Positions 6,554-49,057 are shown, counted from the stretch's first letter. The stretch is 64,000 nt of DNA from Paraphysomonas bandaiensis (GCA_965644295.1 CBFFRP010000380.1:62001-126000); one strand, 5' to 3'. Numbers and translations: made by a program. Notes: generated by a model from the letters alone, not told the origin.

Positions 6554-8174
6554 ATGAAGTTGAAACGGTTTCTACTCCGCTACTATCCGCCAGGTAATGA
6601 TATGAATGGAGTGCAATGGGAATTAAATAATAACACTGGAAATGTTTATATAGGTATTATTCTAGAATATGAATTGCGTGATAAGACACGAGAAATGAAA
6701 GAGATCGATTTGCTACACTTAACTCCAGAGTAAGATATTTGTTGTTAATGTGATTATTTAATGTGTGTTGTAGTGCTGATGTAGATGTTATTGTGAATCA
6801 AATTGTCTTTGAGGAGCCCCTCATTTCCGAAAGCAAGAAGCCACACTTGCGTAGATCGTTATATAGTACGTTATATTCGTTTTCTTTGTTGCTATTTTGA
6901 CTCTGTACACAGAGTTGATTGAAAAGCTCGAAAGTAATGAAGCGAGCGACTTCTTTCTGTTTAAAATTCTCCGCGCACACATCTTACCTCTAACGAATTG
7001 CGCATTCAACAAGTCGGGAGATAAATTTATCACTGGTAGTTATGACAGGACGTGTAAAGTATGGAATACTATTACTGGAGATGAACTTTTAACACTAGAG
7101 GGACATCGTAACGTTGTATACGCCATTGCCTTTAATAACCCGTATGGTGACAAAGTTATCACTGGCTCTTTTGGTATGTTTTGTAATTGTTGTACCGCCG
7201 TAAAACTAAGTGTTATTGTAGATAAAACATGCAAACTATGGAGTGCGGAGACGGGGCAGTTATATCACACCTTCCGCGGGCATGCAACGGAGATAGTTTG
7301 CTTGTCCTTCAACCCACACGGAACAATGATAGCTACCGGGTCGATGGACAATACAGCCCGCTTATGGGATGTAGAGGCCGGGGAATGCTTGCATACACTT
7401 TTGGGACACACTGCAGAGATCGTATCATTAGACTTTGACACGCATGGACAACGGATAATTACCGGATCTTTTGATAATACCGTCAAGGTGTGGGATGTGC
7501 GGAATGGACGGTGCATCCACACTCTCAACGGACATCAGGGCGAGATCAGTTCCTGCCAATTTAATTACGCATCAGATCTGTGTATCAGTGGATCCATTGA
7601 CAGAACTTGCAAGGTATTTTTCCCTGTTGTCTTGTGTTCTGCGTGCAGAAAACCCCATTCATTCTATCCTTGCACTCTCAAGTGGTCTTTCGTAGACCCG
7701 CACCATGCAAGCATATGCAATGTCGTCCTTTGAATTTTATATTTTAGCCTTGTGCTTACTGTATCTGTTTGCTATGAACAGGTGTGGGACGTTCAGAGTG
7801 GGACCTGTATTCACACCTTGCGTGGACACAACGATGAGATCCTGGATGTATCCTTCAATGCCACCGGATCCAAGCTTGTTACCGCTTCTGCGGACGGAAA
7901 TTCTCGCGTGTATAACACTATGACTGGAGCCTGCCATGCCATTCTCACTGGGCACGAAGGTGAGATATCAAAGGTGGCATTCAACCCTCAGGGGTCACGG
8001 ATCTTGACCGCCTCGTCTGATAAATCTGCCCGTATATGGGAGACAGAGACAGGTGATTGCCTGCAGGTACTTGAGGGCCACACGGATGAGATTTTCAGTT
8101 GCGCATTCAATTACGAAGGTGATACAATTATCACCGGCTCCAAGGATAACACATGCAGGATATGGAAGTGCTGA
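6554..8174 (+). CDS. DAW1: Dynein assembly factor with WD repeats 1 (WDR69/ODA16)
   Basis: Characteristic N-terminus [19 protein letters not shown], then [28 protein letters not shown] and WD40 repeats ending [12 protein letters not shown]; five introns. Confidence 0.95.
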
Positions 8175-14773: not shown

Positions 14774-15299
14774 TATGTGTACTACATCTTTGTATGGAAT
14801 GGTAGTTCTGTTTATTTGATTTGGTCTATTCCAGAGTATCGTCATATCAACTATGAACCTTAACAATACATAACTCCAATAACTTTAAATTATTTTCAAA
14901 TTGTGATTCAATGTGTTGTCCTAAAAATTAAAGTTCACGAAATGAAATAAGAAGAAAGTGAATTTACACAACAACCGGTATGCGGGTAGTACTCTATCTG
15001 GCCCTAACTTGAATTTCAGACTTAAGAAAAGAAAAATGACAAACCCTTGCTCTTTTGAATGTATCATTTATTATTTCTTACTACAGCTGTATAAATTGGC
15101 AAAAAATATGAAGTATTCTTCACGTGTATAAACTATGCAATGATTCTGATTAGCATTTTAAATACAATGCTTGGTCATTCATGACTGTGAGGTAGTGACT
15201 ACTAGTATAGTCATGTTCGGGCTTGTGTAAAAATTAATTGGCAATTTTTCAATTGCTAGGTTTTAGAATAATAACTGAACTATAATCTCATCAGAGTGA

Positions 15300-15850
15300 A
15301 GCCGTATTTCACGCATAAACATCAACATTTCAAGGTGACTAGGTGTCATTCACTTGTGAAAATCAGTCGTAACAATCTTAGCTCTGCTAAACAACCTCTC
15401 ACAAACATTGGTGCTGCTATACAAATGTTTCATGTAACGATATTGTGTTGCAGTTTGATGCATGCTCTCTTATTGCGCTTTCGGTTGTCTCTAAGGAAAG
15501 GAATGGTCTCGTCTTCCTCCTCATCATCTTTCTCATCATCAATTTCATCATATGCAGGTTCGTTATATATCAAAACGCGTCGCACATGTGATTTTTCAGC
15601 GCGGAATTTGGACTACTGCTTTATCGAAACATGCATTTTCAACAATGTCCGCGTCTGCACCCAGGTGGAAATTCATCCCAGGGTATTGACGAATAATATC
15701 ATCCAATTGCACACGGACATCATCTAGACTAAGCTGTTCTTATCCATCTGGTTGTAAAAGTTTGCAAATGATGTTAAACCTTTCTATACACCCCATTTTC
15801 ACTACTATACTTGAATATTTCGAAGCAGTTGAATACCTGCAATCACCTTA
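15300..15850 (-). pseudogene. Decayed hAT transposase, C-terminal part
   Basis: Minus-strand translation gives LSLDDVRVQLDDIIRQYPGMNFHLGADADIVENACFDKAVVQI and STNVCERLFSRAKIVTTDFHK*MTPSHLEMLMFMR (hAT dimerisation-domain ERLFS motif), with stops and frameshifts. Confidence 0.8.
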
Positions 15851-16080
15851 TGCCATGTATCGCGACGACCGTTGTGGAGGCACTCAGTTTGTTCTTTGCC
15901 AACAATCGTTGACATGCTATACTACTCTTGCGTGCTGAGATTATATTATACTGTCACACATGGTTGTGATAAACAGAATAATAACGTGAATGTGCACTTA
16001 CATCCAAACTCCAAACTTCTATTTTAACAGACATTGGGTTAGTACCTATGATCAGAAGCTATGCATCTTAAGATACAATA

Positions 16081-16346
16081 TAATAAAGAATTGATCTTTA
16101 TAATAGTAAAACAATGTTGTGATTATTAGAGTGTAAGTAATGAACACGATAGAGTGAAAATTATGAATAACAATATAGAACGTACTATCATGCACAACGG
16201 AATAGTTAGAAGTGTAACTGATAATGACGACGTTATGATGACGATCACGTATCTTCGACAGATACTCTCTCTAATTCAGTTCATGGTATATTTCATTGAA
16301 CATTATAACTCACAGATGCAATCATGTGTTAAGCTGAATCCTAATA
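16081..16346 (-). repeat. Putative 3' LTR (~265 bp)
   Basis: Starts immediately after the PPT; its distal end AATAAAGAATTGAT (16082-16095) is identical to 21550-21563, which abuts the PBS. Confidence 0.65.
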
Positions 16347-16545
16347 CGCCCCCTCAATGAAATAATTAGTGAACCGTAGATAATAGAGAGAATATGAACT
16401 TATGCACACTGAGAGTAAAAACCAGAGTAGCAGTCACTAGTCAATAATAAGCGAACTGCAGAGATGCCATATTGTGAGACCATCCTTCTAGTCCAGCATC
16501 ATGTATTGAATAAAAGTAAAAAAAATGGTAAAAACTCCGTGTAAC

Positions 16546-19500
16546 TCAAACTAGCCACCTAGGTCGCTTGTGGCTTGTTAATTGTGATTTAGGTGTCTCT
16601 GAGGTTGTTGATCGCTTCCTGTTGTTGCTGGATGGGATGTCGAACCCAGCTCCCCCCATCAATGTAGTTCGCAATTGAAGAAAATTAGTTGCTCCTAGTG
16701 GTTTCGTGAGAAGATCGGCTAACATTGACGTGGTGGGAATATGGTCAACAGTCAATTGGTTTTCGGCAGTATTTTCTCGAATGAAATGATACCGTATCGC
16801 AATATGTTTCGTACGACGATGATGAGTAGGATTGTAACATAATTGGACTGCCCCTTTATTATCGCACCAAATAGTTGTTGAGAATGGAAGTTTGAAACCA
16901 ATTTCTGATAATAAAGAGCGTAGCCATAATGCTTCCTGAGCTGCTGACGATAGAGCCATATACTCAGCTTCAGTAGATGACAATGCCACAGTTGTCTGTA
17001 ATCGAGATTGCCATGATATAAGACAATTACCTATGAAGAATGTAAAGCTGTAGTGGACCGTCGAGTGAGGTGACACCGTGCCCAATCGCTATCGCAGTAT
17101 CCTGACAATGTTATGTGGGATCCAGAATATATCAATCCTTGCTTAGCAGTGCCTTTGAGATACCTAAGAACATGTAGCGCAGCATTACAGGTAGTTAGAT
17201 TAGGCATATCAGAAAATCTGGCAAGAGTATTGACTGCATAGGCGATATCCGGTCGAGTGCATACAGCTAGATACATTAGTGAACCTATGAGTTCCTTGTA
17301 GGGGAAATTCTGAACATAACTTTGATTTGACTCTGAAAGATGATTGTATTCATGTAAATCATAGTTGAAAGACAGTAACATAGGTGTTGACATGGGTTTA
17401 CTGTTAGACATGTTGAATTTGTCCAGTAACTTTCTGACGTACTGCTCCTGACTGAGAGTCGTGATATTTTTGTCAAAATCTTGATGAATGGAGATGCCCA
17501 AGTAATAGTCTAGGAGTCCGAGATCCGTAATTTCGAACTTTTTGGATAAATGGTCTTTGAATTGTTGGATATCAGTGTCGGATGTAGATGCTATAATAAT
17601 ATCATCCACATACATGGCTATTAGCATAATCCTGCCATTAATCTGCTTTTTGAATATACACGGGTCAGATATTAGTCTGGTGAAACCCATATCTAGCATA
17701 AAATTTGTACAGCACTTATACCAGTTAAGACCTGCTTGCTTTAGACCGTAGATGCTTTTCATCAGTTTGAGGACTTTTCCGTCAGGGACGTCCATGCCAG
17801 GAGGGGGATACATGTATATGTCCTCTTCGAGGTCAGCATTGATGTACGCAGTTGTGAAATCGATTTGGTGCAATTTGAGTTTCATAATAGTCGAAAGGGC
17901 AATAATTGTACGTAGTGATGTAGCCTTTGCGACGGGGCTGTATGTATCATTGTAATCGATGCCTTGGATTTGAGTAAAACCCTGTGCGACTAGTCGAGCC
18001 TTGAATTTGATATCATTCTGTTTTCTTTTTATTTTGAATATGAGTTTCCCCTTTATGGCTCTTGCTCCAGGTGGTAACGCAGTGTATCTCCAGCACCCTT
18101 TCCTCTGAAGAGTGGATATTTCTCTATTGATAGCATCGATCCACTGCTGTTTATATTTACCTGAAATAGCATCTTGAACACTCTTTGGTGTATCGGTTAG
18201 CTCGTCAATGTCATCGCAATTACTGATAGCATGCATAACAATATCAATATTGTTTGTATGTAATTTTGATATACATTGTGTGTCATGTGCCATATGATTT
18301 ACTACATGTTTAGCATTTACATCACATGTATATACACCATCACCTAGTTTGTGTATATTTACAATTACCCGTTTCCTGGCCATTCTCCTGCTTCGGAGAA
18401 CACTCTTTCTACCAGCTAAAAATTGTTGTTTTGCTGTAGCACGGACCTTACTTGGCCCTTCAGGTGTACCCTGATTTTTCCAATCTCCCGATGAATCAGC
18501 AGACTTGTTACCGCGTTTGGCCATACGCTGGTGCACACGATCCACTTGACCGTGTGGTGCCGGATTCGGCACTAGATTCCCATTGAATTGTTTCGGAGGG
18601 CGAGTCTTCGCTATCTTTGCATCGGAGTGGGTAGGTTCACACCGATGGCTGCTGATTCTCTCCTGCGCGGCATCATGATGTCTGAGATTCTCGCCACTCC
18701 CCCTGGAAGTAGCGGCTGGCGCTGGAGATCCAATAACTGTATCGGGGTCTTGATCTGATTTGCTGGATTTATGTATTGGGGTTTTCGATCGAGACGTAAT
18801 ACATTTGAGACCAACTGCTTTGAGTTCTATGTATTCTTCAGTGTACTTTTCGACGTCTGCAGCATGAATAGGGTCGTCGAGCTGGATGAGTCGTGTCTTG
18901 TCACCACTGTCGTCGACTAGACCACGATACGCTGCGATTAATCCTTTTCTGAGCTTTATTTGAGTCGTTACATATGTTAATCCATCGTCTGGATCTACAT
19001 GAGCTAGACCTATGAGATATTTGAAACTTTCTACTGTCCTGGAGGTCTCATTCTCTCTGAAGATCTCATTTATCTCTTTAAAATATCTCTTATCCGCTGG
19101 TGGGACACATTCGTTGAAAAATACATGTCCTGATATAACAAAATCTCTTAATGCGGGAACAAAGACTATATATCCAGGACCATCCTCTCGATAGCCCATA
19201 AAATACCCAGGCCAGCTATGTCTGTCCCAATTGTTCTTTCGGAGACTGGAATCGATATTCACAAAGCATTTACATCCCCATATTCTGGCATAACTCAAGT
19301 CTGGTATTTCGTTTTCGATAAACTGAAGTGGAGACATAAATCCTTTAGCTGTTTGACACGGTAACCTGTTCTTGATGTGTATTGTCGCCCTTGAGGCTTG
19401 TTCCCAGAAATTCGGTGGGAGTCCAGAGTCGATAAGGCTGCTGAGTGCTCGTTCTTTTGTTGTCCGCCATGATCGCTCTTGGAATGGGTTATCCTCGGGG

Positions 19501-21539
19501 GTATACGGAGAGTTGAAAGTCCATGTAGCCCCTATTGATTGAAGATACTCTAGAACTTTTCTTGATACCAGTTCCTTCCCGCCATCCGCATGATAATGTT
19601 GTAGGCGTTTGCCTTTACTATGTAGATACATGACAACTTTCTGGATGGATTGGATGACGAAATCTTCATCTCTCGTTGGTCCGTAGGAGTCCCATTGGTG
19701 TCTGGAAGCTACATCTGTCATCCCGAGTATGTAACGGTTGCCAGTAATGATTGCCTCCGGTGCATGGGGTCCAGAAAAATCGGCTACTACTAGCTCCCCC
19801 AGCTCATTCGCTCTTCTTACACGCTTGAGCAGCATTTGTCTGATAGCGTGTCTATGTTTTCGGCGATGAGATTTACCACTAGCACAACCATCACATAGGC
19901 CACCCGGTAAAGAAGTAGCATTCATCTCCGACTTCGTTAACTTAATACCCGTTACTAATTTTGACTGTACAGCTTTCTGTATGAGTCCAATTGAAGAATG
20001 TGCCAATCTCTTATGTGCTAGGGTTGCGAGTGGGCCTGAAGCAGTTGAAGCAAGGTGGGATTCGTCAATAGGAGTACCGAGGTCTGTTAACGGAATTTCA
20101 TATAGGCCTCCAACTCTCTTACCCTTTGATAGCAGTATTTCATCTTTATATATCTCAACTGATTGGTTTCCGAACAAGATTTTATACCCTAGGTCATCTA
20201 ATTGGCTGATGGACACGAGTGTTCTTGAAGCATGGTCCACGTGCTTGCACTTGGGGATAATACCAAGTCTTCCATGTCCTGAAGAGGTCATAGTTGATCC
20301 TGACTTAGCTGTTTGAATGTCGGTGAGGCATTCCTCATAATTGGTGATGTATCCGGCTTCAGGTGTGATGGAGACTGTGCAGCCAGAATCAAGGGTCCCC
20401 ATTCCGGCTTCTTGATCAAAAACGAAGTTCGTTTCGTCGTTTGTTGGATATCCGACTCCTCCGAAGTCTCGTCCTTTCTGTTGTAATGGACCACTGTCTT
20501 CATAATCTGCAAACTGGTCGGAGTCGTCGTTTTCAGTGCTCTGATGGGTCTGGAATCTAACTTTTTTGAATTTCCTACTGGTTGATTTGTTTCCAGAGGA
20601 ATTCTTCATCTGTTGGATTCTTTCCCATGAGTGTTTGCATTCTGAAGCGATGTGTCCTTTTCCATCGCATCGGAAACACTTAATGTCCTTGTCAGCTCTC
20701 TTGTCATGTTTCGGTTTATTGGAACGGTTTCTGAAAGATGTCCCCTTTTTGCGCTTGGAATTCACTTTATTTCGGGAAAATGGGGGTTTTGAGGCTGCAA
20801 GCTGAATACTGTCGGTTTTTGTTTCTTCGTTGCTTGACAAGAGCATTCCGACAGACGAGCTTCCTAATCCGCGTAGTCTGCGTATGAGTGTTTTGTAGTC
20901 ATCGATAGGGTGCATCTGCAGGTTGATCGCCAGTTCACGATACGTCATATTTTCTTTGGATACCAGGCCTTGTCGAATGCGTGATATGAGATCTTGGTCA
21001 CTTATCCGATGACCATAATTAATCAGCTTGTTTCGGAGCTTTTCGACAGCGTCAAGAAAGTTGATTATCGACTGACCTTTTTTGATTTTTATGCTCTGAA
21101 ACTGGCCAATCAGATCAGTGATGACGTCGTTAGTCGTTTTTTCTTTGAAGTGGTTGAGCAAGTCCGTCCAGGCGGTTTTACCGTCTCCATCGGGGACGTT
21201 CTCCAAAATCCCTTCAGCCTCTTCATTCTGACCAATGATAGAGCTTGCAATGACTGACCATAGGTAGTTATTACCTTCATCATAATATCGTTTCGCATCC
21301 TGATACTGTTCGAGTCGATACTGGTAGTCCTCGTCATCTGAGTTTTCTCCTGCTTCAGGCTCAATTGGGTGATCGTTCTGTAGAGTATAAACGATCTTAG
21401 GCTTGCGATAGAACCATGCACGGCACTTCTTCTGCCACCTGGAGAAGTTCTTCGCATCGAATTTTGGCATTGAGTCCTTTCGCTTGTCGGTTGTCGAATC
21501 CGAGTCGGTTGAGTCGTAACTTGTAACTTTAACTGACAT
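16546..21539 (-). CDS. Copia gag-pol polyprotein with one frameshift in RNase H (~17047)
   Basis: Zn knuckle CFRCDGKGHIASEC; protease LDSGC; AHKRLAH...CDGC; integrase VADFSGP, HADGGKE, QERSWR; RT KARLVAQGF and MYVDDII; RNase H YCDSDWA, continuing in another frame as ISWQSRLQTTVALSSTEAEY...ADLLTKPL. Likely ATG at 21539 right after the PBS. Confidence 0.93.
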
Positions 21540-22263
21540 CTCGCTACCAAATAAAGAATTGATATATATAATGAAGCCAGCCAATTAATTGGCAACATTA
21601 ACCAATAATAATAATTGAAACTATTATTTTTTTAAACCCATTAACTGTTACGCAAGCCTGGTCATGTTGTAGTTTCGTAGTTTTCACCACGCTTTGGCTC
21701 ACTTGCAAAATTCTTCCGCTTACTGAAATCATAGAATGTGTGCAGTGGTGCAGTGTACAGTCTACATGTTTATTCTAAACATAATATACTTCAAAAGCAG
21801 AGCAGCGTGGTTAATATCAATGGGCAATGTAGCAGTCTTGCTGTACTCCACTGAAAACTGACAATAGCAGCATGCTATAATATATTATATATAATAATAA
21901 GATATTCACCAGCACCGTGTATGTTCATACTTCAGAGAAGAAAAGAAATGACACTGCTAGATAATAAGTCATGTTTTATTGATGACTTCTAACTTGATAG
22001 AATAGGGCCTAATGCATTATAGGTGAAACCTCAGGAGTATGTCTGAAAAATTACAAATTTCGGAAGCGTTATAATATTTGGAAAAGGAAAAATACACAAC
22101 AATGATTATATTCGTTATAATATCTCGCTAATCATGCAGTATCGCATGAAAGGCAATATATATATTGACGTACTACTATCTGGACACATGATGAACTTGC
22201 ATTGATACGTGGCTCATAACTAATTTGCAGATCACAGGATCATACAGGGTAATATACAGACAC

Positions 22264-22818
22264 TTAGAAGTCGTCATCGGAATCAATCTCATCAAGAGGA
22301 TTCTCTCTCTTTCTCATGACACGATAGAACTCCTCCTCGTTGATGACGCCATCACCATCTCTGTCGGCTTCATCTATCATTTCTTGCAGTTCTTCGTCCG
22401 TCAAGTTCTCCCCAAGCTCATTTGCCACCCTTTTTAAATTCTTGAATGATATAGCACCCGTATTGTCATCATCAAAGAGAGCAAAGACTTTTAATATTTC
22501 TTCTCTTGAGTCGCGGCTTAGCATACGAGGGGTCACCATTTCTACAAACTCATCGAACGTAATACTCGCAGATGCCAAATCCTTGTCCATGTCGACAAAC
22601 ATTTGACGAATCTCCGCCTTTTTTACTTGAAATCCAAGAGCTCTAAAAGCAGCCTTGAGTTCACGGACATCAATTATGGACTTGCCCTCAGTGTCGAACA
22701 AGTTGAAAGCTTCTTTAATTTCTTCCATAGACTCATCATCAAGCCCCTGCTTAGTTTTAGCAGCTCTTCCTCGCTTGGGTGGTGAGAGTGCACTAGAACC
22801 TGCAAACTTTTTCGACAT
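22264..22818 (-). CDS. Centrin (caltractin), EF-hand protein
   Basis: [59 protein letters not shown]; intronless; start taken at MSKKFAG. Confidence 0.93.
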
Positions 22819-24390
22819 TGTATAAGTAACTGTTATATTGATATTTCTTTGCAAACAGTTCAAATATAGCCGTATGCACAATGGAGTTTGTTGAGATTGC
22901 TCATCACACTGTTTTCTAGTAGTTTGAGATCATATTGTTATGGGGGTTTTTTGCAACGACGTTTTTAAAATAAACTGTCATCGTATCTTGAAAGGACAAA
23001 ACTGAAGTTCTAGAGCTTATAGAGACAAGTTTTTGATCCGCCATAATCTTTGGATCTTCAACTTGGCTTGGTTTCACCATATGCATGATTGCTATTGCTA
23101 TATACGTACATATCTGTAGCCAATGTCTGTTAAACAGGCAAGGTCAAATACACTGGCCAATGTACTCATCTTGAAAATAATGCAACATCATTCAGGTGTA
23201 TGTCGAGGAGAGTGAATTCCGTCATGTCGCGTTAAACATCAGTTGAGATATTCCGATGAGTCCAGGAGTGCTTGTACAATGATTTGTCTGAGGATATCTT
23301 AGTCAGTGACAACTAAAGATTCTGAATCCACGTACATTATTTGTGAATAGGATTCGAATCAATTACTTACACATACTCGATTCAATAATCTTTATGGGTA
23401 GTGCTTGTGAGGTACACTTGTAGTGATGTCAGACAATACGAGTACTCGTCTAAAACTCTCATCAACATCCTCAATCTGGATGTATGGCATAACTTAATCG
23501 CATAATTGAAATATTATCGACTTAATGCCGAACACACAGAATATTGCCTATGTTATGTATAACCCATTGAAATATGATTATTGCAATGTAATATAGGAAA
23601 CCGTATATAAAGTGTTAGCCTTTCACACTAAAAATATTTCATATCTACCATTGAAAAGTTGTGTCATAAGGTAACAACACCACGATTAAAATGTGAATAG
23701 TTTGCTGAAACTAACCTTCTATTATTTAACATTCACCAATATCTCTTTAGAACTGAAATGGCAACTGTAAAGCTGTAAAGCTGTAAAGTAGTCTCAAGAT
23801 GATGTACAATAAGTACAATAAAGTGGTATTTAATGACTTATATCGGATCATTGAAAACCACATGGCATACGTTACTAATGTCCCGTCCAATAGAATACTA
23901 CACTACAATACGTATACTATAGCTAGCATGCATGCAAGCATTCTGTCGTCGACAATAACGTCTTTCAGAACCTAAAACTCTATGCTCTAAACGAATGAAA
24001 TTTTTTAATTCAGTTTTTTTAGGTCAACTGAGATATATGATCAGCTACATAGGAATTTGAGTTATCAACCTGCTACATCCATTTTGTTAGACACTGGATT
24101 CAGCTCAGAGCGTGATCGTCTTACAGATCATTTATATCAAACATTCACTGCATTGTACCCCATTAAAATTCGTATTCTACATCAGCAAGTGAAAGAGAAA
24201 CAAATATGCAATACATATTACGAAATCGGCTTATTACACACTGTTAGGTTTTCGCGCACGAACGCAACAAGCTAATTACTGTGAACAAACACTATGCGGT
24301 AACTATGTTGAGCATTCAATAGCAACCCAATTCAAAATCATTTCATACTGAAAAATGTCATTAACACTCAGTCGCACTGGAGTACACTCG

Positions 24391-25662: not shown

Positions 25663-27169
25663 ATGTCCCATCCACAAGATGTTCCGTTAACTGGTCATAA
25701 TACTGCTTATGCTATTTGTTTTTGGCAAGGTTTGGGGAATCTTTTTCCTTGGAATGCATTCATTACAGCTGCACATTATTTTGCTATGCGTTTCTGTGGT
25801 ACAGCATTTGAAAGTAATTTTGAGAATTATTTTTCTGTTGCATTTATGTTGTCGCAAACAACTGGATTGGCTCTCGCAATTAGGTATCAAGACCATATGC
25901 CTTTAACTCAGAGGGTTCTTGGTCCACTTCTCATAACTGCGGCTGTCTTTGTGATGACAACTATTCTAGTTACGATTGATGTTAACAAAAATCTTTTGTT
26001 TATTATTACTCTTTTGTCGTGTATGGTTGTTGGTTTGTCGAATGCTTTGCTTAGTGGTGGATTGTTCGGTCTATGTGGTAGTTTTCCCCCTCAATACACT
26101 GGAGCTCTTATGGGTGGCCAAGGATTGGCTGGTCTTGCGGTTTCTGTGGCAAGTATCGTTACAACATGGGCAGGAAATCCCGTAGATATATGTACCGATG
26201 ATGATGTGGACGATGATGATGGCAGCTGTGAAGAAGGGACGGATTACAGTGCACTGGCGTACTTTTGTGTAACATGCGTTGTGATGGGCACTTGCGTCTT
26301 TTCATTCCTCGCGCTGATGTCTCTTCCATTCACAAAGTAAGTAATTCTTGAAATTGAACATATATATTGTGGAATATATATAGTGGCCTATATTTATACC
26401 AGATTTGCAGTCGAAGCGAAAAACTGAACCTATATATTTTAGGTATTTCCAGGAAAAGTCTCTCGCAGACCACGCTCGAGGCCCTTCAGTCGATGATGAT
26501 GTAACGAAGGCTCTCATTCAGCGCTTGACAAATAACTCTATGGACGAAGAGACAGAAAACCTGGTTGACACTAAGGGCACAGCTCCTCCGGTAGATGTAC
26601 AGCCAGCCGCCATATCTCCCGCCAAAGTAATGAAAGTTTTCAAGCAAGTTAAGCCTGCTGCTCTTGGAGCTTATATGTCCTATCTCGTCACCCTCTCTCT
26701 GTTCCCGTCTATTACTGTGCTCATTGAATCTCAAAAGCAATGTGACAGCAATGCCTCTAGGTTTAACAACGATCTTTTTATTCCCTTCTTCTTCTTGATG
26801 TTTAACTTATTTGACTTCTTCGGGAGGGTGTTTGCCGGGATACATCACCTAGGAATTACCAAAGAGAATGTTCTTTTGCCAATCTGCCTTAGGGTCGTTT
26901 TTGTGCCCCTCTTTCTCCTATGTAATGTATCTGGCAGTCAGTTGCCTGTGGTGTTTAAGTCAGATGCTTGGCCTATTCTCTTTATGATTGTATTTGCTTT
27001 TACCAATGGACACTTTTCAACGATGGCAATGATGTTTGGACCGTCTATGGTATCTGCAAGAAATTCTGGATTGGCGGGAACGATCATGATATTCTTTTTG
27101 ACATTTGGCCTTCTATCGGGCGCGGCTATGTCTTTCGTTCTATTATATATTAGCCAAGGAAGTATTTAA
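25663..27169 (+). CDS. Equilibrative nucleoside transporter (SLC29 family)
   Basis: GLGNLFPWNAFITA, GQGLAG, FNLFDFFGR, FTNGH; many TM segments; intron ~26337-26442. Confidence 0.93.
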
Positions 27170-31105: not shown

Positions 31106-32167
31106 TTATTTTTTGTTAGGAGCTGAACGACATGCCTTATGATTGAACGGAGCCTTATAAGCCACAGCCATGATCACAACAGCTCCGTCAGATATTTCCT
31201 GCATACTGCGTCCATATCCCCACATAAGTTCCTCTTGAGTGAAGTCCGAAGTACGCATACCCAACGACCGAGCCGCGTCGATTATAAAATCTCCCCCTCC
31301 ACCCATATGGCTCTTGGGAACGCAAAATCCAACATCCATCATCATCTGTCGGACCTTGAATTTTGTGTAGCGGTGATAATCGGAAGGCACACCATGCAAC
31401 TGCGAACTCTGAGGTACTGTAAAAAAGAGAGTTCCACCAGCGTTCATTGAGTCATATAGAACTTGCATCGCACGGTCTGGATAAAGAAGGTGCTCGAAAA
31501 CCATAGTAGCAATAATAGTATCAAATTTGACTCCTGCTTCAGCAAGATTGTAAATGTCTCCATATATAGTTTTCCCTTCCACAGTTGTCTTGCCTTCACG
31601 ATACTGAATACTATACTTGTTTTTGCACACAGGGACACGGTTCATGTACCCAATATCCCATTCCAAGCATGTAGGACCCTTCAGTTTATCTACATGCGCT
31701 CGTAGAAACATATCTATATAATAGCGTTCAAAAATGGCGCTACTGTAAGCGTATTTGGTGTAACGTGGATCCTTTTTCATTGGTCTGACGAACCACATTT
31801 TCAGTCCTCCATATGCACGAGACCCATGAAAGGGAAGTAATTGTCTTTTGGCTAGAACTCGGAGTAAGAATATGAACCCCTCTTGCACTATACTTTTAGA
31901 GTTGGCATAAGTGTTATTGAGATAGCGGTCTTCCTGTTTAGCCCACTCTAATGCCTTTATAAACTCTTCTGTCTGTAACTCATTACGGAGTAAATCTTTA
32001 GCATGTGGTGTCATAGAAAATACAAGATCATCGAATAAACATTTATTGTTACCACTGGAGAGACTTACTGATGTGTCGATCTCTTCACTGGTAATTAAAT
32101 TGAATGACAACACCATCAGGAGCAGCAGACACATAATATAATGAGGAATCATGATAGTTATATGCAT
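31106..32167 (-). CDS. Class I SAM-dependent methyltransferase-like protein with N-terminal signal or anchor
   Basis: ERYYIDMFL, CLEWD, FDTIIATMVFEHL, GGTLFFTVP, DYHRYT; hydrophobic N-terminus; intronless. Confidence 0.75.
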   Translation of the reverse strand: MHITIMIPHYIMCLLLLMVLSFNLITSEEIDTSVSLSSGNNKCLFDDLVFSMTPHAKDLLRNELQTEEFIKALEWAKQEDRYLNNTYANSKSIVQEGFIFLLRVLAKRQLLPFHGSRAYGGLKMWFVRPMKKDPRYTKYAYSSAIFERYYIDMFLRAHVDKLKGPTCLEWDIGYMNRVPVCKNKYSIQYREGKTTVEGKTIYGDIYNLAEAGVKFDTIIATMVFEHLLYPDRAMQVLYDSMNAGGTLFFTVPQSSQLHGVPSDYHRYTKFKVRQMMMDVGFCVPKSHMGGGGDFIIDAARSLGMRTSDFTQEELMWGYGRSMQEISDGAVVIMAVAYKAPFNHKACRSAPNKK

Positions 32168-46200: not shown

Positions 46201-49057
46201 TGACTTATTTGTTCTACAGGTGCACTTGTAGATGCTTCAAGCGAGACAGCATTACAGGAACAATATGCAGGGAGTGTCATCATTCGATTATCATACACAC
46301 ATTGTTCCCTCTACACATGAAACCTAGTCGGCAAAAGGCCGGCAAGGTTAGTTTATAATTCGAACTGAAATACTCTACTGATATAATTGTTGCTATGCAG
46401 ACAATGCTGAAGATTCTCAACGCTGTGTCAGAGCCGGATATGTCGATACCGGAGAATGTCAAAGGGTTGGAGCTGCAGGATATAGGACGCCAAATTTATA
46501 GAGAGAAAAATAAAAATAAGAGAGAAGCGAAGCGATTGGAGGAGGAAAAAAGCGGCTTTAGCACTGAAAACTCGATAGGAAGCCCGACTAAAGGAGCGGG
46601 CCGTACTCACAGCTCTCTCTACGATGGACATACAGACCGTGCGGCACCATCACAGCTGGTGCAGTCGTTAGCTTATTTGGATGTGAGTTTTAACATTTTC
46701 AAGTAAGTATCGTCGTGAAACATTTTCTTGCAGAAGGATGGGTCTGAGGTGGCCAATGAGAAGGAGTATTGGGACCAAAGGAGCCCTCGCCTTCCTATAA
46801 ACAAGGGAGTATACTTCAACCGAATCAGTGCTTGCTCTGTTCCCCCGAATGTAGATATTACCGCGGCTGGTATGAATCGCATCCAGTTTTTTTATTTCTT
46901 ATCCTGTTGTTTGCAGAGTTCTGGTCCTCCGCCCCGAAAAATCCAAACAAGACCACAAGGGACTACCATGAGAAGTTTGAACACAACATGCCCCTGCCTA
47001 TTGTGGCTGAGGACCGTTTGACCTACACATTGGAGGGCCCTATGGTGTATATCCAGATGCTCCACAAAATAATTCAACTTGAGGAGGCAGATCCTAAGAA
47101 CATTCACTTCGATGGGGGAGACTTACTGAGACTCATAGTCAATCATATACAGGTGTTCGAGCGTCATTGGAGAAAGATGGTGGTCGATCTCCGCACCGGT
47201 GAACTGAATAGACATCTTATAGTGGATCCTAAGGCCCGTGCACTATACCTCAGCACTGCAATGCCTCGCCCGGCTCTAGCATCCCGGTTGGACAAGACCT
47301 TCAGAGATCTTGGATTTCATATGAAGGTTCTTGGGAAAGACATTGTAATGAAGGGCTTCGCAGAGAGAAAGAAAATGAAGGGTCAGGAGTACAGGCGCCC
47401 ATCTTTCCCAGAGAACACTTTCGGTAGCACTGGGTTTCACTCCTCCGACCTCGACACCTCAGGGACCTCGCATGGTCATGGGTCCCAGGATCGGGTTAAA
47501 TTCAGCGCCACAGAGATGCATTCTCCGCCTGGGACTCACTCAGCGAATAAGTCATCTAAATCCAGACGACCGACGATTAAACACGCTGACACTGCAGTAG
47601 TGTGTAGCAGAACATCGCCGGAAGCCCTGTCACTTGGTGGTTCCTTAGATGCCACGCAACTTACCGTTACCCAAACAAGTTTTAACAAAAAAAAATTGAA
47701 GAAAATGAATAAAGCTGAAGCTTTAGTTATGGCATCTACCATGGGCAGTGCCGGAGCTCAAGAAATAAGAGAGCGAACAGCGGAGAAAATGAATCGGGGA
47801 GCGACAGCTAATCGTCGGAACTTTGTTCGTCGCAATTCAGACACTGATAGCTTTAGACCATGCACTGTTGATCAGCTACAGAAAATAACTCACACGTTAT
47901 TGACGGACCCACAAGTCGACTACCACAACTTAGTTGCTCTTTCGGGTAGATTTATTTGCCCGTTCCCAGCGTGCGGCTTGAGCTTCACATCTAGGGATGC
48001 AGCGTTTGATCATCTTCGCACTCATGAACAAAAGCGCAAACTTTATGCGCCGTCTGCCCTCGCTGATTCTCATCTAAACTATTACTGGCCAAAGGACAAT
48101 TTGTGGAGGGATAACCCGAAATACACCAAACGAGTAATTCCACCGGGTGCGATCAAATGTACTTTCAAAGGGTGCCAGGAGGTGTTCATATCGCGTCATA
48201 GGCTGGAGTATCATATGAAGTGGGTTCATAACACCGAGTCGAGGTCCATGACATTGCAATCATTCTTCAAATTCATTGGGAAATCGACAGCAACACCACC
48301 GTATCCACCTCCTGACTATGCCCCTGCGGACTTCTGTTCGAAGCACCTTAAGCTTGACAAGAAATGCCCAATGTGTGTGAGTATCACTGAGGATGACGGA
48401 AAGCCGAAGCAGCCGATGTATTTTTACGACTCAGTACGAGTAGATTTCACGAAGCGTGATGGAAAGGGAGGAGACGTATTGCTGGAGCGAAGTAACTCTG
48501 ACAAGGGCGTGTTCTACGTGAATAATACCGCGGGACAAACACATGGGAAAGTATGTCGCGGTCGGCCAGTTGGAATGCTGAAGGATTGCAAAGGAGACGG
48601 ATGGGTTGCTCTTGTAGAGGTTATTTCAATACTGGAGGCCCAGGAGCTTCACAAAAAGTTTCCCAGGGACGGCGACACTCACCACGAACTAGTGCGAATG
48701 AATGAATCGGATGGGTCTGGGACTATATCTGATCCTGGGGCTCCGAAGTGGGTGAGGCTCATCGACGTGACCGGGATGTTCTACTTAATAGAGACCACAA
48801 AAGAAGATTTCAGTTACCGTTTACGCAACGGTAGCATCCCTCGCGATAATGTCTTTTTTATACGGCCGAAACCTACCACTTCGATTAGTAGTGTACCTTC
48901 AACCGCAAGTAGACAACAGTCCAATGATACAAGTGAGCCCAGTTTCACTCCAGCTCTTCGAAAGAGCGGAGAAGTTGGATCGCGAGTGATGTCATCCCGG
49001 TCGCATTCTTTGCAACAACAAACTCCGAAAAAGCAACGGAAATCGAGTGTTGTGTAG
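43291..49057 (+). CDS. Large multi-exon protein: Cys/His-rich repeats, IQ motifs, C2H2 zinc fingers, BAH-like C-terminal domain
   Basis: Consecutive exons joined by short GT-AG introns; IQAVYRGY, IQRVFRGY, MQRTVRGY, IQSLVRGF; CPFPACG...H..TH and CTFKGC...HMKWVH. Confidence 0.8.

Follow-up and report, generated by a model that had tools for sequence, protein, structure and literature searches.

A young copia retrotransposon nested in an old non-autonomous hAT element of Paraphysomonas bandaiensis, probably followed by a deletion in its 5' long terminal repeat

Results

The window analysed here, a stretch of 64,000 nucleotides (nt) from Paraphysomonas bandaiensis (GCA_965644295.1 CBFFRP010000380.1:62001-126000), contains at positions 15210-21668 a copia retrotransposon enclosed by the two ends of a hAT DNA transposon. 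We consider it likely that this arrangement arose when a young copia element became nested in an old, short, non-autonomous hAT element and subsequently lost about 252 nt of its 5' long terminal repeat (LTR) by deletion. The nesting itself, the contiguity of the two hAT parts, the single-copy state of the junctions and the relative ages of the two elements are directly observed in comparisons across the 62.5-Mb assembly (669 contigs), which was the genome searched throughout. The original prediction for this locus had described an insertion of copia into an older hAT element, followed by a single deletion that fused the two. The first part of this scenario stands, whereas the second does not, as the hAT parts are contiguous in other copies and the loss of about 252 nt lies within the LTR.

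The outer frame of the structure is that of a hAT transposon. The 8-base-pair (bp) target site duplication GTCATGTT can be read directly on the left (15210-15217) and, with the same letters, on the right (21661-21668), flanking both ends exactly as predicted, and everything between its two copies, copia gag-pol as well as the hAT C-terminal remnant, lies on the minus strand. The 3' terminal inverted repeat (TIR) occupies positions 15218-15241 on the minus strand (plus-strand reading CGGGCTTGTGTAAAAATTAATTGG) and agrees with the family consensus CAGGCTTGCGTAACAATTAATTGG at 21 of 24 positions; at position 2 it carries a G in place of the family-conserved A and so starts with CGG instead of CAG. 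The 5' TIR, CAGGCTTGCGTAACAGTTAATGGG, is the reverse complement of 21637-21660 and begins with CAG. A recount of the two terminal 24-mers agrees with the earlier figure of 19 identical positions out of 24. The family consensus has 226 genome matches with at most two mismatches, compared with none for a reversed control; the termini in the window are genuine transposon ends, and chance is excluded. The host thus shows both the 8-bp duplication and the short TIRs beginning with CAG or TAG that define the hAT superfamily, the latter being mutated at the 3' end.

Without copia and one copy of the 5-bp duplication associated with it, the host is 957 nt long and can be aligned to full family copies over 950-985 nt. 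Its 5' part (98 nt; 21563-21660, minus strand) includes the 5' TIR, and the right-end 88 nt (21573-21660) recur at 40 other places in the genome with 76-91% identity. In the alignment to family copies, the 3' part (859 nt; 15218-16076, minus strand) follows directly after this 5' part. Homologues of window positions 21660-21560 and 16082-15794 adjoin each other in ten loci (L042, L043, L046, L049, L050, L053, L054, L056, L060 and L037). At the insertion site, uninterrupted hAT copies read ...GGCTGGCTAAATTATATATAGCATCTTAAGATG, whereas the window reads ...GGCTGGCTTCATTATATATA, followed by copia and then ATATTGTATCTTAAGATG. No sequence of the host hAT element was lost at the copia junction. Since the two parts are contiguous in more than 10 other members of the family, save for the 5-bp duplication created by copia, the N-terminus of the transposase was already absent before copia arrived. 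Its absence, which had been attributed to the formation of the junction, is thus a trait of the whole hAT subfamily and not the product of a fusing deletion.

What is left of the transposase is a decayed C-terminal (dimerisation) remnant at 15266-15469 on the minus strand (translation STNVCERLFSRAKIVTTDFHK, stop, MTPSHLEMLMFMRE), in which a remnant of the ERLFS motif lies at 15353-15469 on the same strand. The presence of such a remnant together with a copia gag-pol of the same orientation had been anticipated and is borne out by translation and by the copia-type order of Pfam domains. In the window, the remnant consists of stop-interrupted pieces that gave no Pfam match; the homologous stretch passes the curated PF05699 cut-off of 21.4 bits in the two closest relatives, L024 (23.9 bits) and L022 (22.9 bits). 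A complete transposase with a catalytic domain is absent from the host, whose 957 nt align end to end with short copies, and no long open frame was seen in its translation. Judged by its sequence, the host is classified as a non-autonomous hAT element.

Copies of this hAT family are numerous. Among the matches to the right end, those that reach it in full mostly terminate exactly at position 21660 or a few bases away from it, and the hAT loci read at the sequence level start at this position with CAGGCTTG; for the left end, there are at least 40 matching places with 76-87% identity. Pairing of TIRs in the fetched loci delimited elements of 318-1430 nt with 8-bp duplications containing no or one mismatch, and genome-wide, the TIR-to-TIR pairs listed span 72-2755 nt. 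Among the best-matching TIR pairs that were examined, six have a perfect duplication, and a perfect 8-bp duplication is no mark of youth in this family. Family copies share 69-93% identity, and the sample contains no near-identical pairs. A genome-wide profile search with PF05699 at E ≤ 0.001 gave no match; at a looser threshold, the best matches within the host family were remnants whose open frames do not exceed 113 amino acids (aa). No autonomous master copy with the TIRs of the host family (CAGGCTTGCGTAAC) was found in the assembly. The host hAT family looks old and abundant, and apparently extinct or at least old.

Two further observations concern hAT-related sequences elsewhere in the genome. 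At each of G000:C112:15345-15416 and G000:C125:6962-7033, two TIRs that match the consensus perfectly point towards each other within 72 nt, giving a miniature inverted-repeat transposable element (MITE) of this family in minimal form. A weak PF05699 match of 20.5 bits, covering profile positions 44-83, occurs at C288:159034, C77:116783, C150:178128, C258:64046 and more than 40 other places, with frames of up to 331 aa around it; these places look like a second, young hAT-like family.

The guest is a Ty1/copia element. Its 3' LTR is complete (265 nt, TATTAGG...CTTTATT; 16082-16346, minus strand) and shares 98-99.6% identity with those of other copies. The main open frame (21584-17031, 1517 aa), which from the gag ATG at 21539 covers gag, protease, integrase and reverse transcriptase (17031-21539, minus strand), contains the Pfam domains Retrotran_gag_2 (residues 136-203), zf-CCHC (301-318), gag_pre-integrs, rve (614-696), SH3_retrovirus and RVT_2 (1164-1403), with the integrase preceding the reverse transcriptase as in Ty1/copia elements. 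The C-terminal end of pol (RNase H part, 179 aa; 16546-17085, minus strand) appears in the list of open reading frames as a separate, out-of-frame segment. Compared with the nearest full copy, L075, the window copia is 99.6% identical over 5491 nt. Its private changes are five substitutions and a one-base loss at about 17047, called against three copies with an unbroken frame, and it is this loss that splits the frame.

The corresponding copia family matches the gag end of the query at no fewer than 166 candidate places (96-97% identity) and comprises more than 100 near-identical copies at 98-99% identity. Ten full copies measure 5711-5759 nt with LTRs of 265 nt; nine of them carry perfect 5-bp duplications, and in at least six the LTR pair is identical. 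An unbroken frame of 1681 aa is present in five copies, and a sixth has a frame of 1670 aa. The family is active now or was so until very recently. Its LTRs end in TATTAGG and CTTTATT, not in the usual TG...CA, with edges set by the perfect 5-bp duplications of nine of the ten copies; these unusual ends were seen in L064, L067, L068, L070-L072, L074, L075 and L077, and in the window at 16082-16346.

We rejected two other ideas. Self-priming of this copia family finds no support in the first 310 nt of L075, which span the 5' LTR and the region of the primer binding site (PBS): the two share no complementary stretch of 7 nt or longer. A targeting of hAT elements by copia is contradicted by the 19 other copia loci examined, all of which lack hAT flanks. 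Another hAT copy of the host family, L036 (G000:C352:347959-351156), contains at about 1906-2109 a piece with 80-87% identity to the LTR of this copia family; this piece lies at a different internal hAT position and, by its sequence, represents a second, independent nesting event.

At the 5' side, the window copia departs from its family. A putative PBS, TGGTAGCGAGATG, which we take to resemble the Ty1 PBS for the initiator tRNA-Met, follows the LTR directly in ten of ten full copies; in the window it lies at 21537-21549 on the minus strand and overlaps the gag ATG. It is preceded only by the last 13 nt of the 5' LTR (TCAATTCTTTATT; 21550-21562, minus strand), recognised by comparison with full copies, which means that about 252 of the 265 nt have been lost, all of them within the LTR. 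With a complete 3' LTR and a 13-nt 5' LTR, the window copia is a truncated member of its family. The predicted loss of nearly all of the 5' LTR and the closeness of both the PBS and the gag ATG to the hAT 5' terminus are in agreement with these data, the ATG being 121 nt away from that terminus. Deprived of the LTR promoter and of one LTR end, the element is dead as a retrotransposon; the earlier view that it is incapable of normal retrotransposition is upheld by the loss of nearly the whole 5' LTR.

Outside the remnant, hAT sequence begins immediately. The 5' copy of the 5-bp copia target duplication (ATATA; 21563-21567, minus strand) is hAT-derived, with the hAT consensus at this place in other copies being AAATTATATATA, and the 3' copy (ATATT in minus-strand reading; 16077-16081, minus strand) follows the end of the 3' LTR and matches the ATATA of the hAT consensus ...AAATTATATATAGCATC. 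The two copies, deduced from uninterrupted hAT elements, are alike at four of five positions. Before the PBS, full copies read ...ATTATAAAGATCAATTCTTTATT (...ACTATTATAAAGATCAATTCTTTATT), whereas the window reads ...ATTATATATATCAATTCTTTATT (...TTCATTATATATATCAATTCTTTATT). The ten bases ahead of the remnant, ATTATATATA, fit the hAT consensus and not the LTR sequence ATTATAAAGA; their derivation from hAT explains the two mismatches that every other copia copy shows there. The gap is thereby edged by an imperfect direct repeat, with 8 of 10 positions shared between ATTATATATA, made up of hAT flank and duplication, and ATTATAAAGA at positions 243-252 of the LTR. Because the 5-bp duplication ATATA/ATATT is present, we infer that copia integrated normally and that the LTR was probably lost afterwards by slippage or illegitimate recombination.

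On this basis, we propose the following likely order of events, in which (i) a 957-nt non-autonomous hAT element, carrying the TIRs of its family (consensus as above) and only a decayed transposase C-terminus, would have inserted long ago and produced the 8-bp duplication that flanks it; (ii) a full 5.7-kb copia element with 265-nt LTRs would recently have integrated 98 nt inside the 5' end of this hAT element, in the same orientation, generating its usual 5-bp duplication, ATATA; and (iii) about 252 nt would then have been deleted locally, probably by slippage or illegitimate recombination between ATTATATATA and ATTATAAAGA, so that only the last 13 nt of the 5' LTR were left. Several points weigh against this order of events. 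On its left side, the loss begins within 0-1 nt of where the LTR starts, which a random deletion would produce only by coincidence. The repeat beside the gap agrees at no more than 8 of 10 positions, and it is its hAT version that the product retains. With a one-base difference between its two copies and an AT-rich, low-complexity site, the 5-bp duplication is of uncertain length. Finally, the structure is read from the assembly.

The position of the break exactly at the boundary between hAT flank and LTR, and the partial match of ATTATATATA and ATTATAAAGA at the joint, could also be explained if the copia 5' LTR had never been complete at this locus. A 5'-incomplete complementary DNA would then have been joined on the left, at an ATTATA-like microhomology, by end-joining or annealing of the host, while its right end integrated normally. 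However, the 5-bp duplication typical of the family points to a concerted integration of two intact LTR ends, and a comparable end is found in none of the other copies examined. We therefore regard such an origin as unlikely and favour a deletion after normal integration.

An even smaller chance attaches to an assembly artefact, in which the true locus would carry the whole 5' LTR and about 252 nt would have dropped out when a highly repeated element was assembled or polished. More than 100 family copies at 98-99% identity do invite local errors of this kind, but many other full copies were resolved with both LTRs intact. Moreover, a fraction of 0.93-0.97 of the sampled words from 21300-21900 occurs in sequencing runs of two organism labels, although the missing words were not located; about 0.40 of the sampled words from the same interval are found in many marine metagenomes. 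Taken by itself, this word coverage would point to a marine eukaryote, possibly a diatom, and it weakly supports the assembly without proving the junction. Scans of metagenomes with a copy-specific hAT 30-mer beside the junction and with a 31-mer of the right flank gave no matches. The allele with an empty hAT site, bearing a single GTCATGTT, that the original prediction had suggested looking for had no match in a pattern search of the assembly, and the same holds for the pattern of an empty copia site; both results are expected if the assembly is collapsed.

The most far-reaching part of the original prediction was that the composite had been mobilised as a unit. The search for the internal junctions, which had been set in advance as the test that could refute it, found a single copy of each: the 30-mers across the 5' junction and across the 3' LTR/hAT junction each have one genome match at up to three mismatches. 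The sole near-match to the 5' junction, on C79, belongs to an ordinary hAT copy (...TATATATAATGAAGCCAGCC...). No internal junction recurs with a different target duplication, nor do hAT flanks accompany any of the 19 other copia loci. There is no sign that the copia/hAT pair ever moved together, and by the criterion set beforehand the locus is a case of ordinary nesting plus deletion.

A working unit that has been moved, or can be moved, in trans by a hAT transposase while carrying a gag-pol transcribed from the hAT end is extremely unlikely. The perfect 8-bp duplication, both recognisable TIRs and a mostly open gag-pol would suit it, and read-through transcription from an EF-hand gene located upstream on the same strand is conceivable. 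Apart from the single-copy junctions, however, the hAT family is old and diverged and lacks near-identical pairs in the sample, no span of about 6.4 kb occurs among the TIR pairs listed, and the longest family frame with the hAT C-terminal domain has 113 aa. In addition, the perfect duplication is common among old family copies and pol contains a frameshift. One TIR begins with CGG instead of the conserved CAG, and the outermost terminal bases matter for cleavage in Ac/Ds and Hermes. With hAT copies only 69-93% alike, as against 99.6% identity for copia, a joint move would need very recent hAT transposase activity, of which the family shows none. We likewise give hardly any credence to a residual potential in which the truncated copia would still be expressed, either from the hAT end or by transcription running on from the EF-hand gene, and the 6.4-kb composite could be excised or moved in trans by a hAT transposase. 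If true, it would be notable as a case of a DNA transposon acting as a carrier of retrotransposon genes.

The element sits in gene-rich DNA. The EF-hand protein gene (22264-22881, minus strand; four EF-hand-type Pfam matches) lies upstream on the strand of gag-pol, and about 600 nt separate its end from the element. Host genes in the surroundings encode a WD40 protein (6897-7733), a nucleoside transporter (26405-27169), a methyltransferase (31106-32167) and a GH3-like protein (46769-49057).

Discussion

The structure fits patterns that are already known and does not depart from them. Insertions of LTR elements into TIR elements are routine findings in transposon annotation. As in such cases, the younger element lies in the older one, taking out the guest together with its duplication joins the two host halves without a gap, and there are two separate duplications, an outer one of 8 bp for the host and an inner one of 5 bp for the guest. 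There is no essential difference, except that the guest in the window has also lost most of one LTR, which is why gag-pol appears close to a TIR. Nesting across classes is a recognised cause of misidentified TIR candidates (PMC6913007). The truncation of the guest also has its counterparts: small microhomology-flanked deletions are a known route to truncated LTR elements in rice and Arabidopsis (PMC1940013). The loss of about 252 nt from a near-intact young element, next to a short imperfect repeat, resembles LTR retrotransposons truncated by illegitimate recombination; the present case differs in that the loss has the LTR boundary as one of its edges and in the imperfection of the repeat, which is alike at 8 of 10 positions.

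The host resembles non-autonomous hAT elements and hAT MITEs, such as the Ds-like derivatives of Ac-type elements, in its 8-bp duplications and short CAG TIRs, in internal deletion derivatives of 72 to about 1500 nt and in a residual transposase C-terminus, which in the better-kept copies scores above the PF05699 cut-off. In contrast to those systems, no autonomous master with these TIRs was found in the assembly. The guest family is similar to diatom Ty1/copia elements of the CoDi lineages in domain order, high copy number and very recent activity, and recent copia bursts have been reported in diatoms (PMC5485032). A further likeness is the presence of the window sequence in marine and seawater metagenomes. 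The guest family differs in its LTR ends, TATTAGG...CTTTATT instead of TG...CA.

In summary, the locus is an example of cross-class nesting combined with a small deletion that together mimic a composite element, and it carries little weight beyond annotation. It helps to date two transposon families in this genome, placing old, apparently extinct hAT MITEs next to a copia family that was active until very recently or still is.

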